A DNA stretch of 63,484 nucleotides, the filler included, from Dimorphilus gyrociliatus (lineage: Eukaryota > Animalia > Annelida): NCBI GenBank assembly GCA_904063045.1. It is 3 parts of 3 records of this genome, joined end to end, with 100 filler letters (N's around TTAATTAATTAA, not from the genome) between each part and the next. Parts side by side here need not be neighbours in the genome. Positions count along the whole stretch, not along the records: positions 1 to 26,186 come from CAJFCJ010000157.1; 2 more parts are not named here. One strand, written 5' to 3'. Under the pieces are notes generated by a model that saw nothing but the letters and a program-made list of their open reading frames with translations, did no database searches and was not told the origin of the DNA. Position numbers and translations under genes: made by a program. Position 1 is the stretch's first letter, and the number at the start of each line of letters is the position of its first letter. Positions 8,049 to 22,300 of this stretch are shown here, one piece after another.

Positions 8049-10509
8049 GGGATCAACAGAAAACGGCCCCAACAGAAAACGGACCCAACAGAAAACGACC
8101 ACAAATGAACAGAAAACGGCCCCAACCGGAACAGAAAACGGCCCCAACTGAGACAGAAAACGGCCACAAAATTTCGAAATATACAATACTCATAAATTGA
8201 ATAGAATAAGTTAATTTAAAATTTTTTTCTATTAGTTAGTAAATATTGGATGAAAAAATATTAAATTATCCACCAGTTTTTCCTAAGAGGTTGAATATTT
8301 TGCACTATTTTTAAATTCCTGCCAATAGGTTAAAGCAGCTCAAAGGAGATTTTTGCCACAATGCTACCATATTGTTTTGGATGTAAGAAAAAGATTAATA
8401 AGCTGAAGCAAGGTGTTTGTTCACATTGTCATCATAAAGTCCATTGGGCTTGTTTATCAGGTAAGATCCAAATTGATTTTAATGTAAACTAAGCTCTTTC
8501 TTTTGTAGATGGATTATGTTCTATATGTTCAAGTGTTGATAAAAAAAGAATCAGAATTATTCTGAGCAAATGTGATGAAATTTTACAAGATAAATCTACC
8601 AATAAAGTCTCAAATGCTGAAAATATAGATCTAAATCATACAAGAGAAGAGATAGATGTGCAAAATATAATAATGGATGTTGATCATGAAGAAGTGGTTA
8701 CCCTTATTGAAACACTGAATTGTGATGCAGAGTACAGGCTTGTTGATAATCTTAGTGAAAGCAGCCCTCTGCATGGAAATATATTACATTTGAATGAGAA
8801 TGATATCAATATGGAGGAGTCCTTTGAAAGTATACCAGAGGTGAACTATGACAGCAATGGTAAATTCAGAATATTCCCTACAGGAAGTCAAAAAGGCAAA
8901 GAATTACTTGTATCTAATGGTCACTCATTTGTTGTCAAAAGAAAAGACAAGACTTCCATAATTTGGAGATGTGGAGTTAGAAGCAAGAAAATGAAATGTC
9001 CTGCCAGTGTCATTCAAAGAAATAATAACTTCTCTTTGGGGTCTAAATATCATATTAACCCCCCAAAAAAAATTTAGAACAAATTATTGAAATGAAAGTG
9101 ACAGCAAAACAAAAAGGAAAGACTGACACCAATGTTAGTGGAAAACGAATAGCTGAAAATGTTCTGCTTCGTTTTGCAAATATGGGAAATATTATAGAAG
9201 TTGAAAATTGCAAAGAAATGATAAATTACCATAGAAGAAAAAATTGTCTCAATGAACCTATTGGAAGAAACTTTCTTATTAATAATTGCTTCATTCCTGA
9301 TGATTTCTTAAAGAAAGATGTCCTTGAAAATAATGAAAGAGTGATTATTTTTTCCACTTCAAAACAACTTAGCTTACTTGCAGTGTCAAAAGTCTGGTAC
9401 TTAGATGGAACTTTCAAGATTGTTAAGGACCCATTTACACAGTTATTTTCATTTCACTCATTCCTCAAAAAAGAAGGTGAATTAAAACAGGTTCCTCTTC
9501 TATATGCATTCATGTCATCAAAAAAGAAAAAAGCATATAATCTGTTATTCAAGGTAGTTCAACTTGAAATTTTCTCTGAAATGCATTTAATATTCATTTC
9601 ACTGTTTTTCAGTGCATTAATCAACTGCTACAATATAAGGAACCAAAAAAGATAGTTATGGATTTTGAAAAAGCTGTTTGGAAAGCTGTATTAAATAATT
9701 GGGAAAATGTAAATCTGTCAGGATGCTTATTCCATTGGAATCAAGCAGTTTATAGAAAAATTCAGGTATTATTCAACCTAAAACTCAAACTGGAGTCATT
9801 TTTAATTTTGTTTTTTTAGGAGCTTGGTTATTCATCAGACTTCAACAAAAAAAAAGGACAATGGTTTGAAATGAGACAGCTAATGGCTTTGCCATTCCTT
9901 CCATCTCACATTATTCCAATAGAGTTTATTAAAATTAAGGATTACCTTAAATCAATTGATAAACTTGCTGATTTTATTGATTATTTTGAAAGAACTTGGA
10001 TTTTGAATGATGTTTGGTCACCAAAATGTTGGTCTATCTATCAATGTCCAATCAGAACAAATAATGATGTTGAGGGATTTCACAATAGGTTCAATGGAAA
10101 TGTTGGAGTGAATGTTTCATTTTATTCTGTGATAGATGAATTGAAAAGGGAAGCAGACCTTATAGCAGCATATCAAAGAATGTTATCAGAAAAGAAGATA
10201 TTAAGATACCAAACAAAGCTTTATAAGAACCTCCAAAATAAAATATTTTCAATTTGGGAAAGATTTGAAAAGCATGAGATTACTTCATCAGAAGTTCTAG
10301 TAAAGTGTTCTGAACTTTATTTGGTAGCTCAATAAATAAATCAATTGTTGTTAAATTGCATGATCTTTTAAGTTGTAGTCTCATAATGTATTCAACTCTT
10401 CAAATAAACACACTGTCAAAATTTAATTCATTTCTTGTTTTATATATTTTAGGTTGAAGAATCCTGTGGCTGTTTTCTGTCTCAGTTGGGTCCGTTTTCT
10501 GTCGTATTC
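8049..10509 (+). mobile_element. Mutator-like (MULE) DNA transposon 1
   Basis: Exact 9-bp TSD gaaaactac (8040-8048, 10510-10518); TIRs built of tandem acagaaaacggccccaa units; encodes a MULE transposase. Confidence 0.95.
8361..10335 (+). pseudogene. PHD-FLYWCH-MULE DDE transposase, intron-containing, one frameshift near 9065
   Basis: PHD CFGC..CSHCHHKVHWACLS/DGLCSIC split by an intron; FLYWCH GSQKGKELL..WRC..C..H; catalytic YLDGTF, MDFE, GCLFHW, NNDVEGFHNR; frame break in a c5a9 run. Confidence 0.88.
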
Positions 10510-11239: not shown

Positions 11240-11640
11240 AAGAATTATGGTACAGCGGAACAATTTCTAAATTCTATAGAAAACTCTGAATAGTAACTTG
11301 TCATCTATAATTGATGGCTAAAGACCTCAGTTTGCAATGATAAAGCCAAACATCCCCAACTATGTCAATTATGGAAATCTATATCATATTTGAGTTTCAC
11401 TTCATTGTATATGATACAGAACTTATTTATATTTTTATATTTAATTGTCTTGTTTTGTGAATCATTTTTAGGAAAAGGCCATGTTAAGGAAAGGAATTTT
11501 TATTTTCCAAGTGAAAATATAATAAATTTGATGACATGGAACATGACAAGAACAATTGTTATCACTACTCTTTACTTTCTCTAATGATCTTCTAATACAT
11601 CCATAATTCTCAGATAAACAACATTCTCTGTTGTAATTTG
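11240..11640 (-). pseudogene. DEG/ENaC paralogue fragments (minus strand), with stops and an internal deletion
   Basis: Translates to ECCLSENYGCIRRSLEKVKSSDNNCSCHVPCHQIYY and TWPFPKNDSQNKTIKYKNINKFCIIYNEVKLKY, homologous to two distant parts of the 16530-19994 gene. Confidence 0.8.
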
Positions 11641-11649
11641 AACTAATAA

Positions 11650-12395
11650 TCCCTCAAATAAAGCTAATCATCATGTCTGTTTTTCAAGAATGAAGAGTGT
11701 TGTTGAATTGGACCTGTATAAATACTTTAATATTATTTACAACAATGGTGAAAATGGAAATACTTCACTTGATGAATACTTACCAAAATATTTGGATGAT
11801 CGTGCTCAATATGTTTACAATTATACTGGACATCAACAATCCGATTTCATATTCGAATGCATTTGGAATGGTATTCAATGTCCCTCTCAATATATTACAA
11901 AAACAATCACTGAATTCGGTTTCTGCTTCACATTCAATTCTCCCCTTTCCATTTAACCACTCAAACCTCTAACCTCCACTGAAGCTGGAATTAACAAGGG
12001 TCTTTCTTTCTTATTCAACATTGAGCAATATCAACACATGCTTGGACCCTATAATGACGCTGGTGTCAGAATTTTCATACACAATGATTACAAAAAGCCA
12101 CTTATGTCCAATCTCGGTTTTGCAGTAGCTCCTGGAACGCATACGCTAGTTGGTATAAAATGGACAGAATCGAAAAGTCTTGAAAAACATTAATTCATTT
12201 ACAAAAATGATGTATCCATTTTTACAAAAGTTTAAAAATACTTTTGAAGCATTTGGCATTATTAAAGGAACATTTGAAAACTCATTTGCGTCAAACATCA
12301 TTGGCAAAATAATACTTGACTGCGAAGGTTTAGTACCCAATTTTATATTAGCTGAAAGTGCTCTAATATCGCCGCAAATGATATATGTTTTATTA
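11650..12395 (+). pseudogene. Inverted partial copy of DEG/ENaC exon 2, with a nonsense codon and a ~430-bp deletion
   Basis: Near-identical to the reverse complement of 18600-19120 (CAA>TAA at 11954), then jumps to the equivalent of 18170-17960 with more substitutions. Confidence 0.92.
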
Positions 12396-12589: not shown

Positions 12590-13205
12590 AATCTACTGTT
12601 AAAAATAACTTCAGGTCTGTTATTCTTTGAAAAGATTTCATACTTTCTCTAGCAAGGCAAGAGGCAAAGCCTGAATATTTATTTTCTGGATTGATAGTTA
12701 ATCTAGCACCATAACATTTAAAAAATTATATTGAATAGGATCCCATTACTATAGTTGTGAGTGTTGAAATAAATATTACTGTTTTCCTCTTGGATGTAAT
12801 AGTCTTTGCCTTTGTAGGAAAGAGTATATATATACTTCTATCAACAGTCATTGCACAAAGTATCAATGAACTCAATTGTTGTGAAGTCTTCACTAGATAC
12901 TTGCTTATCTGACATCTAAAGTAAAAAACCAATTGGACATCTCTAAACACGCTTACTTCTATTATATAAAACATCTTGAAAAAGTACCAAGCTATCATTG
13001 TGTAAGTATCCATTATGGCTAATGTTCGTAGATAGATTGATGTTGTTGTACCGTTCATCGTTCGTTTTTTAAATATTATAAACCTTACACAATTTCCAAA
13101 TATTCCAAGTAGGAAAAGAATTGTACCAATAATTTTATAGCCAATAAACCAATTTAAAGTATCTGGCGGAAAAATAATCTTAGACGTCAAACTTGAATTA
13201 TTCAT
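12590..13205 (-). pseudogene. Rhodopsin-class peptide-receptor-like GPCR, truncated after TM4/ECL2
   Basis: LGIFGN (TM1), YLRTLAIMD (TM2), RCQI..AMTVDRSIYILFP (TM3), then stop/frameshift; the 12400-12565 repeat lies just downstream. Confidence 0.85.
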
Positions 13206-16529: not shown

Positions 16530-19500
16530 TTATTTAAAAACCTTATAGGCAAAAAAATCAAGAAATTCAATAAGTGTTATGACAGAAGCTCCCAACACAA
16601 GTCCCAAAAATCCACCAACTTCTGACAGAAAAGATAGAAAAGTGAACTTCTCATGTTGAATCATCTTTTCAGAACTCATCTCTTTGTAAAATAAATCCAC
16701 TTTTGCAAAATTCTTTCTGTTTGCAGAAAAAAGAAACTATAGCAAGAGATGTTTGTTGAATTGAAATCTTACCGAAAAAATTCCCTATTAACAAAAGATT
16801 TCCTATGAAATTCATTCAAAAACGCCTCAAGGTCATTGTACTTGGACAAAAGATCACTAAGTTTCTCAATAAAGGCACTAGAATAGTTAAGTGTATTGGA
16901 TGCTATGGAAGATCCTATGCTTTTAATACACAAATTCCATTGTGTTATATCTTGTAAACTGTCCTTTGAACAAGAGTAACTAATGTTGTATTTCACTCTG
17001 GCCTCATTATATATTAAATAGAAATTTATTATATTTCTGTAAACGATTTGATTATTTTCTATATCGTGTCTGGGAAAAGGCCATTTGAAGTAATAAAAGT
17101 CATTTTGCAAGTCAACAAACAAGTTTTCAATTTCAAGAAATTTTCCAATAAATGTTTTATACTCTATTGGAGTATTTTCACAAAAGCCTATCAAACTTCT
17201 TATGTTGCTTAGTAAACTTTCCAGGAATGAACGATCCGTTAGATTCTGTTTGTTTACCCATGAATTTGGCATTAGGAATGCCTCGAATAGTTGAGTTTTA
17301 TTGAGGGCAAGTTGATGAACTTTACGAATTCTTTCAACATTTCCATTGATATTCTTAATGTAGATTAAGAAGGAATAAGAATATTTCAAAATATTTCTAA
17401 TTTCTATAATTGCTCTTGTAAAAAAGTCCTGTTTTTTATTCAATAGACAGTACGATTGAAAGTAGTCATCATTCATTATTTCCTCTATTCTCAAATATGT
17501 TTGTAGAACAATTTCAATTTTTTCACCAACATCACTATCATTTTGATAAAGAATTTCCAATCTTCCTGAATTTTCCTCAGCAATTAGACTATCGTACAGT
17601 GGAATACATTCATCCATAAATGGTAATCTGGAGTCATTGATTGGCATTTGAAAAACTCTTTCAATTTCTGTCATGTGATAATATTTCAATGTGGATATGG
17701 TTTTTAAATGAGAAAAGAATTTCTTTGCCTCTTTTATAGCTTTATCCCAGAAATTGTAGAAATTTTCCCCTTTTTCCATCAATGGGCTAAAACGAAAATG
17801 ATACATAAACTCATCGCAGACAATCAGTGTTGTATTCATTTTCCTTAGATTTTCAATACAATAATAGAGTTGTCTTCTAATGTCATTTTTCATTACTGGA
17901 ACTAACCCAAATAATTTCTCCTTAAAGTGATTTTTTACAAATGAAAAATGACTAAAAGTTTCCGAAACATATATCATTTCCGATGATCGAAGAGCTTTTT
18001 CAGCTAATATAAAATTGTCTACCATACCTTCACAGTCAAGTATTATTTTGAAAATAATGAGCGACGTAAATGAGTCTTCAACTGTTTCTTTAATAATACC
18101 AAATGCTTCAAAAGTATTTTTAAACTTTTGTAAAAATGGATACATCATTTTTGTAAATGAATTAATGTATTTTTTGTTTAAAGCAATAAGGTTTTCATCA
18201 TTCTTCTCACCAATTTCCAATATTTCCAGATATTTTCTCTTTAACTTATCCATTCTCTTTGAATTGCTTTGTATCAATTTATCAACAGTAAATCCTGATA
18301 TCGCTGAAAATGATAGATTTGGTTCGTAATTAATTTGATGGCATGGAATGCCACAAGAACAGTTGCTCTCGTCACTCTTTACCTTTTCCAAAGATCTTTT
18401 TACACAGCCATAAATTTCTGATAAGGAACACTTTCTTTTGTAGTCAGTTGTATTTTCCTGAAGAATTGCAGTAGCTACGAATGGAATACATTTACATATT
18501 GTTGCTACAGCATTTAATTGGCAATGATCTATGCATTGCGCGTGAGATTTATATTTTGAATTGATGCATTTTCCATATGGTTTTTCAAGACTTTTCGACT
18601 CTGTCCGTTTTATACCAACTAGCGTATGCATTCCAGGAGCTACTGCAAAACCGAGATTGGACATAAGTGGCTTTTTGTAATCATTGTGTATGAAAATTCT
18701 GACACCAGCGTCATTATAGGGTCCAATCATGTGTTGATATTGCTCAATGTTGAATAAGAAAGAAAGACCCTTGTCAATTCCAGCTTCAGTGGAGGTTAGA
18801 GGTTTGAGTGGTTGAATGGAAAGGGGAGAGTTAAATGTGAAGCAGAAACCGAATTCAGTGATTGTTTTTGTAATATATTGAGAGGGACATTGAATACCAT
18901 TCCAAATGCATTCGAATATGAAATCGGATTGTTGATGTCCAGTATAATTGTAAACATATTGAGCACGATCATCCAAATATTTTGGTAAGTATTCATCAAG
19001 TGAAGCATTTCCATATTTACCATTGTTGTAAATAATATTAAAGTATTTATACAGGTCCAATTCAACAGCACTCTTCATTCTTGAAAAATAGACATGTTGG
19101 TTAACTTTATCTGAGAGATTATAAATATAGTTATTGTTCAAAAAATGAATGCCTTAACCGTAACCTTAACCTTTAGATGAGACCCCTTTAGGTAAAAATC
19201 ACTTGCCATTCTTGCTAAACATTTGTCCACCAAAAAAATGTTATCTTGAAATATTTCTGTTGTGAACATTATCTGACAATCCTTTTATTTTTTTATCATA
19301 AAAAATTTAGTCAGAAAATGTAAAAGGGTTTTTGGGTTGATTGACCAGATTATTTATTAAATAACAAAAAGCGCTTTGAGGATAATTGATATTTTAATAT
19401 ATTATAAATAATTGACAAGATTTATAATTGCTAAAGTTAATTTTCTTTTCAGAAAGAAACAGAACAATAGAATAATGTGAATGTGTCAATTACCATTCTG

Positions 19501-19994
19501 AAATGGCAATACTTTCTCTTTTGTCCAGTAAAAACAGTAAAGCCTTTGAATTTTTCACTTTAGGTTCTTTTGTCATTTGATTAATCATTTAACGTTTTTT
19601 GTTAAGGAGAGGTCATTATCCAGATATGCTCATTATTTTTTAAGGGTTAGGGTTAGGGTTAGCATTATGGTTAGAGAATAGCAAAATCATTATACATAGT
19701 TATATACCTGAATTTATTTTGATTACAGACTGTAATTGATGGAAATTCCAATTTTTTTGAATAGATCACTTCAACATTGACGGTTACATCTTTCTTTGCG
19801 TAGTCTAACCCTCTTTGAACCACTTGAAAAGAGAAGAGAAACATTGCTCCAAAGACGATAAGAATCCATGTAATTCGCCTAAACAGTGAAGATTCTTCAG
19901 TAAAAATATTTTTTATACCATGAAATGTTGTTTCACTAGTGAAATTTGTCCACGTTTTAACATTTTCCACTTTTTCTTTACCAGTAGTTGTCAT
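16530..19994 (-). CDS. DEG/ENaC (ASIC-like) channel subunit, 926 aa; exons 19994-19708, 19079-16773, 16716-16530
   Basis: TTFHG motif, TM1, FPSITVCNQNKFR, GHQ..FECIWNG.QC, GFCFTFN, GLSFLFNIEQ, GVRIFIH, LEKPYGKC, Cys-rich thumb, and a manually recovered last exon KNFAKVDLFYKEM..LSEVGGFLGLVLGASVITLIEFLD (TM2 with GAS belt); splice phases are consistent. Confidence 0.95.
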
Positions 19995-21494: not shown

Positions 21495-22300
21495 ATCCTT
21501 GGAGAGTTTACATACAGCATAGGCAAAAAGTCCTCAGCCACCTTGAAAATTTTTAGTTTAGATATTAAGCTATACTGAATAACTACTTTTAATTGATAAT
21601 AATAATTATTAATAAGTATAAACTAATATCCTTTATGAAAAGTTATCAACAAATTGTTTTTCTTTTAAAAAATGCGGTTTTAGTAATTATTAAGAGTGAT
21701 TAGTTAAAAATGAGTCACCATCTATTTAATTAAATATTTTATGTTAAATCTACCTTGGGACACTCTTTAACAATTTATATACATGAATTATTATAATATT
21801 TTCTGAAAATATAGTAATAATAGTTTTAAACCTTTTTAATACTTGGTATGACCACACTCATTGAAAAGACACAGCTGTAGCCTCTTTCTAAAACTATTAA
21901 ACAATTTTTCAACATATTCAGTTGGAATATTGTCAAATTCTTGCTGTGTTACCCTCCATAGATCATCTACATTTGTGCACATATGTTTACCAACCCTTCC
22001 TTTCAGGTATGACAATACATTTTCAATAGGATTTAGGTCAGGACTCCGAGCTGGCCAGTCTAGCAAGTGCCTTATGTTCTTTTCATCTAGATACCTTAAG
22101 GTACACCTAGATGTATGGCATGGAGCACCATCCTGCATGAACACTTGGTCCCTATTGTATTTCTCTAAAAAAGATTTATCAAGAATGTCTTGATATTTTT
22201 CTGAATTTAAATTGCTTTTGTATAAATGTATACCTCTGCTGCCATCACTTTTTATAAACCCCATATATATTTAGGGAACCATTTGCCTCTTTAAACGTTT
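21495..22300 (-). mobile_element. Tc1-family transposon 3' remnant (DD34E C-terminal half)
   Basis: FMQDGAPCHT, WPARSPDLNPIEN, GHTKY; terminal tacagcataggcaaaaagt resembles a Tc1 TIR. Confidence 0.88.

Follow-up and report, generated by a model that had tools for sequence, protein, structure and literature searches.

The gene and its knuckle insert

On the minus strand of the window (by which we mean the whole stretch of Dimorphilus gyrociliatus DNA analysed here, 63,484 nucleotides including filler) lies an intact three-exon gene of 926 codons for a subunit of the DEG/ENaC family of sodium channels; the species is a tiny marine annelid. Exon 1 (19708..19994, all gene features being on the minus strand) consists of 95 codons plus 2 nt and ends at the donor ag/gtatat. 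From the start codon on, it encodes the cytoplasmic N-terminus, in which the FHG motif lies, then TM1 and the strand FPSITVCNQNKF after TM1. Intron 1 (19080..19707; 628 nt) has GT...AG borders and the frame is kept over the junction; a short telomere-like (CTAACC)n run is found within it near 19641-19675. Exon 2 (16773..19079; 2.3 kb), bordered by the acceptor ttcaag/ and the donor cg/gtaag, falls into an open frame of 790 codons (16769-19141). Its first part (18290..19079) encodes the ectodomain core, namely a short finger, the beta-ball, the palm, a cysteine-rich thumb and beta10, ending in NLSFSAIS. The second part (16773..18289) is the knuckle insert, which begins with an extended alpha6 (TVDKLIQ...) and ends with alpha7 (NREFF). 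Intron 2 (16717..16772, borders gtaag...aaacag) measures 56 nt, the median intron of D. gyrociliatus being 66 nt. It directly adjoins the C-terminal end of the insert, and the split codon cg/A restores the frame into exon 3 (16530..16716; codons 16716-16533 plus the stop), where beta11-beta12 (KNFAKVDLFY...), TM2 with the GAS motif and an 8-residue C-terminus are encoded.

The gene was searched exon by exon, and for full-length comparisons the public paralog P0001 was used. All three exons exceeded the curated cut-off of the Pfam ASC family (PF00858, 23.6 bits): exon 1 matched profile positions 1-81 (E 3e-19, 69.8 bits), exon 2 positions 130-409 (ORF residues 52-310, E 1.3e-38, 133.6 bits) and exon 3 positions 403-455 (E 2e-15, 57.3 bits). 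The translations contain the family motifs TTFHGIKN (HG before TM1), FPSITVCN (after TM1) and LGASVITL (GAS, in TM2). In a Kyte-Doolittle plot with a 19-residue window, hydropathy peaks at 2.23 in exon 1, at ITWILIVFGAMFLFSFQVV (TM1), and at 1.98 in exon 3 (TM2). With the solved structures of ASIC5/BASIC and ASIC1/2 (9mkz, 9mky, 6l6p, 7cfs, 2qts) the channel shares the whole core, from the HG motif and TM1 through beta-ball, palm, cysteine-rich thumb, beta10 and beta11-12 to the GAS motif of TM2. The core cysteines are invariant among 14 relatives and align with those of ASIC5 as well. By phmmer, exon 2 matches residues 133-376 of ASIC5 (9mkz_C, E 9.8e-21) and exon 3 residues 413-471 of ASIC1 (7cfs_A, E 2e-06), while P0001 reaches E 8.6e-45 with ASIC5. 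The latter is simply the best-scoring solved structure, a comparison by score which implies no orthology to an ASIC.

Between the knuckle helices alpha6 and alpha7, where the solved ASIC structures have 6-20 residues, the protein encoded in the window has about 485 (16773-18289). Several alignments place the additional residues there. The ASC profile match ends at position 409 in exon 2 and restarts at 403 in exon 3; likewise, the alignment of exon 2 to ASIC5 9mkz_C reaches residue 376 and exon 3 picks up at 378. In the paralog P0001, residues 14-361 correspond to residues 4-364 of the ASIC5 chain and residues 849-909 to 371-431, leaving 487 residues in place of 6.

These results agree closely with a first-pass annotation of the locus, made by a model from the sequence alone, which had described an insertion of about 500 residues at the knuckle of a DEG/ENaC channel, stop-free within one 2.3-kb exon. 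The coordinates it gave, 16773-18290, were right to within one base, and for the distance between the strand ending in NLSFSAIS and that starting with KNFAKVDLFY, put at about 505 residues, we counted 508. The HG motif, TM1, cysteine-rich thumb and GAS motif of TM2 are intact, as it had said. The finger, which it had called short, is by visual comparison about 30 residues shorter than in ASIC1, and the shortening relative to ASIC5 is slight.

Coding constraint and distribution of the insert

With stop trinucleotides making up 6.85% of the window, a run of 506 open codons is expected by chance with P = 2.6e-16. The full-length insert frame is also open in at least 11 paralogs with 26-50% identity. 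Comparing the window gene with its paralog L002, dN/dS was 0.40 in the insert versus 0.12 in the core. The same value of 0.40 was obtained for the insert between L005 and L006, where dS is unsaturated (0.37), and over the other pairs the insert ranged from 0.30 to 0.67. For the core, the values were 0.07-0.16. Furthermore, three public paralog models (DgyrCDS14629, 14545 and 12248) correspond exactly to the translated genome loci and read through the insert without interruption. The insert is a translated domain under purifying selection.

About 17 genes of D. gyrociliatus carry an insert of the window's sequence type, and about twenty sister genes in this species share a large knuckle insert. 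Knuckle inserts just as large are present in two other groups of channels from this genome, and sequence similarity to the window's type could not be detected in them. Comparison among the three insert types by hhalign gave E 0.03 or worse, with colinearity only over the first 30-50 residues, that is, the extended alpha6. For a second insert type (genes C3 and C19) dN/dS between species is as low as 0.04-0.11. Searches of 1.84 and 5.8 billion proteins yielded relatives of the insert only in D. gyrociliatus and one related species, and a profile search of the 1.84 billion with the insert matched only DEG/ENaC proteins; the product of the window gene itself was absent from the protein databases searched. 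Literature searches on knuckle insertions and on Dimorphilus ENaCs returned no description of such a domain. At the level of the genome, every match to the insert is located inside or beside a piece of an ASC gene, and the same insert junctions are seen repeatedly, on many independent contigs as well as in the second species. In a Pfam scan, neither the window insert (ORF residues ~310-790) nor the other insert types matched a family; the sole entry for the insert at E up to 1, Spo16_C, was spurious. Two very long insert-matching open frames (1414 and 3744 aa), considered as possible other host proteins, turned out to be runs of N read as X.

In the subfamily of the window gene, copies are numerous on small, repeat-rich contigs, and there are many decayed ones as well. 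One such set of decayed paralog fragments is found in the window itself at 11371..12392, as an ASC core piece with stop codons followed by an insert piece: 11777-12229 (+) matches ASC profile positions 129-270 and contains 2 TAA, 12180-12392 (+) shares 80% identity with insert residues 37-109, and 11371-11502 (-) shares 43% with insert residues 396-439. Outside annelids, some nematode DEG/ENaC clusters (866 and 973 aa; 'del-10-like') belong to the ASC family, resemble the window protein in total length and are nearest to the paralog P0008 by language-model features (ESM Atlas). This likeness is one of length and language-model features, and their extra residues may be cytoplasmic tails or finger insertions.

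Two other explanations of the 1.5 kb have to be considered. It might be absent from the mature protein, as an open intron, a retained intron or an alternatively spliced stretch, and the position of intron 2 right beside the end of the insert would fit this. However, neither the probability of such an open frame, nor its preservation in diverged paralogs at dN/dS below 1, nor its inclusion in public gene models agrees with this explanation. In the window gene, a search at the start of the insert for another donor that would keep the frame found none, and the sole good internal donor (attg/gtgagaag, near 18210) does not match the phase of exon 3. For C3 and C19, exon skipping cannot remove the insert, since one open frame holds both the insert and TM2. 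We regard a loss by splicing, which the first-pass annotation had named as a finding that would overturn its proposal, as very improbable. The same annotation had also pointed to an open frame derived from a transposable element. A foreign open frame, captured or derived from a transposon, or a chimera of the assembly could be suspected on a small contig that also holds transposon remnants, namely a FLYWCH ORF (8658-9077) and a DDE_3 fragment (21836-22264). But the insert has no Pfam or transposon domain, be it similarity to a reverse transcriptase, a transposase or an integrase, and its confinement to ASC genes in the genome, the exclusive DEG/ENaC matches in the profile search and the recurrent junctions in two species all contradict a foreign or artefactual origin, which we consider extremely unlikely.

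Predicted structure of the insert

The insert has no membrane segment, its hydropathy maximum of 1.57 (19-residue window) falling into a segment with charged residues. Six cysteines in the insert are invariant over 14 sequences, and it has 7 N-X-S/T sites, of which N250 is invariant. The lack of a membrane segment together with the conserved cysteines and glycosylation sites therefore assigns the insert, like the remaining ectodomain, to the extracellular side. Modelled alone by AlphaFold2, it gave a pLDDT of 85.4, a pTM of 0.75 and 18 helices, the longest of 53, 48 and 37 residues (53 residues corresponding to ~8 nm), which bears out its earlier description as largely helical-looking. On this model the insert is predicted with high confidence to be an all-helical extracellular domain. 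In the full-length AlphaFold2 model of P0001 the insert likewise had a pLDDT of ~90 and the channel core one of 30-60, because the alignment was shallow; Foldseek with this full-length model gave ASIC matches at a TM-score of just 0.1-0.2. From the ranges covered in the fold searches, the domain may consist of a long proximal bundle (residues ~33-100 and 286-498) in which a four-helix bundle (~100-286) is nested. An internal repeat was not found when the four quarters of the insert were compared with each other by hhalign, nor was a hypervariable region found within the insert, where conservation is even along the length.

The search for known folds, which had been proposed together with the original description, gave nothing significant: with Foldseek the insert had no PDB match at E < 0.05 (E at least 0.06). 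A wide search with VIA-align returned generic helical bundles only, with a best Z of 11.5 versus the background of ~13-14 which the tool gives for helical proteins, and a sequence profile search of the PDB with the insert returned nothing but designed coiled coils, at E > 0.04. The dynein tail (DHC_N1, PF08385), suggested by the ESM Atlas (score 0.96, recognition 1205, i.e. weak), was dropped, as no dynein appeared in the Pfam or the PDB profile search. In general build, the predicted insert resembles the two-module helical sensor domains of the bacterial receptors McpS, McpZ and TorS and the elongated ClyA-family proteins AhlB, MakB and Hbl-B, all of which have long antiparallel helices in stacked bundles outside the membrane. 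Against McpS/TorS-type and ClyA-type bundles VIA-align gave Z 7.6-9.9 and an rmsd of 3.7-13.9 A over most of the model, at 6-11% sequence identity. These scores are within the background of helical bundles, and the resemblance would be an analogy of shape rather than evidence of kinship. Neither the tether nor the ligand-binding role that the first-pass annotation had suggested gained specific backing from these fold searches.

Possible roles of the insert

A single compact ectodomain allows DEG/ENaC channels to sense protons, peptides, salt, shear and touch. The route from a force or a large ligand to the gate is still under debate, notably in the case of the 'tether' model. Additions to this ectodomain are known from several members, such as the GRIP domain of ENaC, the extracellular regulatory and neurotoxin-like domains of MEC-4, the finger insertions of FaNaC and the EGF domains of the C. 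elegans EGAS proteins. Like the knuckle insert, these are lineage-specific, and they tune gating or ligand recognition. To our knowledge, all of them are much smaller and located in or near the finger or on the N-terminal side, and a helical-bundle domain at the knuckle is not among them. The knuckle insert is a new variation within a known channel family.

The role towards which we lean slightly is that of a binding module for an extracellular partner, carried on top of the channel. In the gating of ASICs, knuckle and upper palm are a static scaffold, and thumb, finger and lower palm move; therefore, a large domain could be grafted at the knuckle without blocking the moving parts. Judging from this site in ASIC and ENaC trimers, three inserts would project from the top and the outer rim and approximately double the height of the ectodomain; the location of the knuckle in solved ASIC structures is the only basis for this putative apical crown. 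The partner might be a soluble ligand, or a component of the surface or the matrix, which is the weakest step in the scheme. Its occupancy, or the load on it, could be passed to the gate via alpha7, which runs straight into beta11 and the beta11-beta12 linker. In the window gene's own subfamily, the fast divergence of the insert, its many copies on repeat-rich contigs and the many decayed ones would favour diversified recognition of partners, as in families of a chemosensory type. Taken further, the insert might be a new extracellular sensor domain that provides a gating input as yet unknown in the family, with a macromolecular or matrix partner acting at the apical helical crown, the ~17 fast-evolving genes forming a diversified receptor repertoire and the three insert types of one clade, unrelated in sequence, going back to one ancient insertion diverged beyond recognition. 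This wider proposal appears possible but rather doubtful to us. Our tree of the channels is built on 167 columns, with long branches.

Mechanosensing via extracellular anchoring is the classic tether model for degenerins, and the insert could be a long glycosylated helical rod which anchors the channel to matrix, cuticle or mucus and conveys shear or stretch to the gate. Its very long helices and rod-like predicted build, the predicted glycosylation sites and disulfide-type cysteines and the strong conservation of the C3/C19 type, as expected for a fixed structural partner, are consistent with this. There is also a precedent for the location: in alpha-ENaC, activation by shear force through the matrix depends on the N-glycan at N511, atop the knuckle (bioRxiv 10.1101/102756), so that the knuckle top can serve as a matrix attachment point for a gating input. 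In that case, however, a glycan is the tether and the knuckle is of normal, short length, whereas here a protein domain of ~55 kDa would take the glycan's place. Moreover, one tether function does not call for ~17 fast-diverging copies, and no adhesion-type domain or motif was recognised in the insert; we consider a tether rather unlikely. Alternatively, the domain might be passive or serve biogenesis, through the choice of subunits in co-assembly, by spacing or shielding the ectodomain, or as a module for folding or trafficking. The immobile knuckle argues for such a passive role just as well as for binding, conservation is even with no obvious binding hot-spot, and a large paralog family would need determinants of assembly specificity. 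Generic fold matches and the lack of a hypervariable tip marking a ligand site also count against a binding module. Yet purifying selection on ~500 residues in many copies would be costly for a mere spacer, and the C3/C19 type in particular is under very strong selection; we take a passive role to be a minor possibility.

The genome of D. gyrociliatus is known for its streamlining. About twenty times over, a confidently predicted domain of ~55 kDa has been grafted onto the part of the ectodomain that stays still in gating, and the family shows the birth and divergence of a new extracellular domain inside an ion-channel gene. If the sensor-domain proposal were true, DEG/ENaC channels would gain a gating input new to the family, and even a passive domain would be a useful natural fusion site for engineering. 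The gene is short, its domain boundary is clean and relatives without the insert exist in nature, which makes the system experimentally tractable for asking whether the channel can be gated from the knuckle, and which partner provides the input.

Gene structure and position of the insert

The focal channel gene is located on the minus strand of a window with about 30% G+C, where a 790-codon open frame spans 16769–19141. Its three exons (19994–19708, 19079–16773 and 16716–16533 plus stop codon) comprise 926 codons in total. Read from the DNA, all exon borders are canonical (exon 1 ending ...AAA TTC AG/gtatat; exon 2 with acceptor ttcaag/ and donor CG/gtaag; exon 3 with acceptor aaacag/), and both split codons encode arginine. 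The 56 nt of intron 2 are consistent with the median intron length of 66 nt reported for Dimorphilus gyrociliatus. Intron 1 contains a short interstitial telomere-like run at 19641–19675, (CTAACC)n on the minus strand, that is, of the TTAGGG type. The focal product was absent from every protein database search, whereas at least four paralogs were present, so that the public annotation may lack this gene copy. Searches with the focal gene were run per exon; the full-length alignment was done with the public paralog P0001.

The Pfam ASC profile matches exon 1 over its positions 1–81, exon 2 over 130–409 (ORF residues 52–310) and exon 3 over 403–455, and the last ~480 residues of exon 2 are without any Pfam match. 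Compared with the PDB sequences, exon 2 corresponds to residues 133–376 of ASIC5 (9mkz_C) and 156–399 of human ASIC1a (7cfs_A), exon 3 to residues 378–431 and 413–471, respectively. In P0001, residues 14–361 align with ASIC5 4–364 and residues 849–909 with 371–431. These alignments place the insert (16773–18289, ~485 residues) between the knuckle helices alpha6 and alpha7, bracketed by beta10 (NLSFSAIS) before and beta11 (KNFAKVDLFY) after it, which bears out the large knuckle insertion proposed in the first-pass annotation. The channel features described there as intact were found again in the translations (HG motif, TM1, thumb cysteines, GAS motif); FPSITVCN is intact as well. The finger, there called short, is clearly so in the comparison with ASIC1 only.

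In HMMER alignments, the helix that opens the insert (KRKYLEILEI) and the one that closes it (NREFFRKNFAKVDL) both resemble a single stretch of ASIC5, alpha7-beta11 (SRKYIRENLVKIEI). The insert may thus have arisen when this stretch was duplicated locally and new sequence expanded between the two copies.

Coding status, constraint and predicted fold

With stop trinucleotides at a frequency of 6.85% in the window, 506 open codons would arise by chance with a probability of 2.6e-16. When the whole assembly (Annelida, Dinophilidae; 77.9 Mb, 349 contigs) was searched with the insert, at least 11 stop-free full-length copies with 26–50% identity were found, together with two copies interrupted by N-gaps and several decayed fragments. 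Contig C20 carries a tandem cluster of four genes alignable along the insert at 25–31% identity. By the Nei-Gojobori method, dN/dS is 0.40 for the insert and 0.12 for the core, the channel part outside it, between the focal gene and its paralog L002; 0.40 and 0.16 between the paralogs L005 and L006, for which dS is unsaturated (~0.37); and 0.30–0.67 and 0.07–0.15 in other pairs. An open frame by mere chance can be set aside on these grounds. The same holds for splicing out of the insert, since no in-frame alternative donor was found at its start and the public models DgyrCDS14629, 14545 and 12248, exact translations of genome loci, retain it uninterrupted. A transposon ORF was likewise set aside as a reading of the insert. 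Thus, neither event named at the outset as speaking against the insertion is upheld: the insert is coding and constrained.

Without any hydrophobic segment, with a net charge of about -1, seven N-X-S/T sites (N250 invariant, three others in at least six of ten paralogs) and six cysteines invariant or nearly so among 14 sequences of both species, the insert is consistent with the oxidising, glycosylating extracellular location that the topology also demands. The helical appearance noted earlier is reproduced by AlphaFold2, which from a ten-sequence alignment predicts 18 helices (pLDDT 85.4, pTM 0.75), the longest at 286–338, 353–400 and 177–213. In a model of full-length P0001 the insert is again confident (~90) and the channel core poorly modelled. 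The ranges matched in fold searches with the model suggest a long bundle (~33–100 plus 286–498) and a separate four-helix bundle (~100–286). Matched were designed bundles as well as McpZ/McpS/TorS sensors, ClyA-family proteins and BAR domains, all with Z of 11.5 or less, which lies in the range given as background for helical proteins. Conservation is even along the whole insert, and no internal repeat was found in it.

Related genes and distribution

A genome scan with Pfam revealed uninterrupted ordinary ASC genes on C11, C12 (738k), C6, C29, C2 (two), C7, C13 and C20 (215k). Further ASC genes have a gap of ~440–490 residues at the same profile position as the focal gene. Those on C3 and C19 (DgyrCDS12248) hold insert and TM2 in a single open frame; those on C12, C2 (two genes) and C186 have theirs split over several exons. 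Neither insert type belongs to a Pfam family or has significant similarity to the focal type in profile-profile comparison; a weak colinear match between the types is confined to the first 30–50 residues. In a maximum-likelihood tree (167 core columns) the insert-bearing genes all fall on one side of a branch with 88/98 support, together with one plain gene on a very long branch. That a single old insertion then diverged rapidly is the economical, not a proven, explanation.

With a HMMER profile of ten inserts, five proteins were retrieved from 1.84 billion representative ones: four from D. gyrociliatus and P0005, from the Logan assemblies of SRR23372216 and SRR23372229. Since no site in the D. 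gyrociliatus genome exceeds 34% identity to P0005 and clear orthologues in the same runs show 84–90% protein identity, these runs stem from another species. Word-seeded searches of 5.8 billion proteins yielded no relatives outside these two species. The insert-bearing gene on C19 (G000:C19:3714944-3722481) adjoins a ryanodine-receptor gene, as does its second-species counterpart L030; the neighbouring receptor exon is 80% identical between the species at the DNA level, and synteny is conserved. A tandem paralog of the second species (L016:406-2754, Logan SRR23372229) carries a collagen-like GPSGPSGPSGPKGPSGP run in its insert, absent from the D. gyrociliatus copies.

The genome paper reports a 'canonical' ENaC repertoire only, a DEG/ENaC phylogeny including D. 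gyrociliatus leaves the insert unmentioned, and we found no description of a large knuckle insertion in the literature. The insert-bearing proteins are already public as unnamed products. Long nematode DEG/ENaC clusters, a lead from the ESM Atlas, have a similar total length; their extra residues may form cytoplasmic tails or finger insertions.

Possible role and genomic surroundings

Judged from solved ASIC/ENaC structures, a trimer would carry three insert domains apically, on a knuckle that would serve as a static scaffold tolerating a grafted domain. The insert is most likely a module that binds an extracellular partner and whose state would be relayed via alpha7 to beta11 and the beta11-beta12 linker. 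That the insert is instead a tether, for which alpha-ENaC offers a precedent in that its shear sensing requires a glycan on the knuckle (bioRxiv 10.1101/102756), we regard as unlikely; a passive insert, with a role in assembly or as a spacer, appears improbable, too. For the putative binding module, the many fast-diverging, partly decayed copies of the focal subfamily, located on small repeat-rich contigs, point to diversified recognition. In contrast, inserts of the C3/C19 type are highly conserved when the two species are compared (dN/dS 0.04–0.11), which suggests a fixed partner.

At 4–5 kb from the focal gene, decayed pieces of a same-family paralog (11371–12392) consist of a piece of the ASC core, interrupted by two TAA stops, and a piece of the insert that shares 80% identity with residues 37–109 of the focal insert, indicating local duplication and decay. 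L009 and L010 (G000:C114:64210-74447) are two identical paralog copies in inverted orientation. Both lack the part of the channel core that precedes the thumb, and they adjoin a retroelement ORF that contains reverse-transcriptase and integrase-like sequence; the pair may stem from a recent inverted duplication or have been duplicated in the assembly. Two transposon remnants were seen in the surroundings, a FLYWCH zinc-finger ORF with two ORFs of no assigned family after it (8658–10335) and a fragment of a DDE_3 (Tc1/mariner-type) transposase (21836–22264). On the minus strand there are also a rhodopsin-type GPCR exon at 12726–13205 (7tm_1, with a weak Srw chemoreceptor match) and, at 1187–2185, a protein-kinase exon with a repeated EKMSVDESSK-like motif in its C-terminal part.
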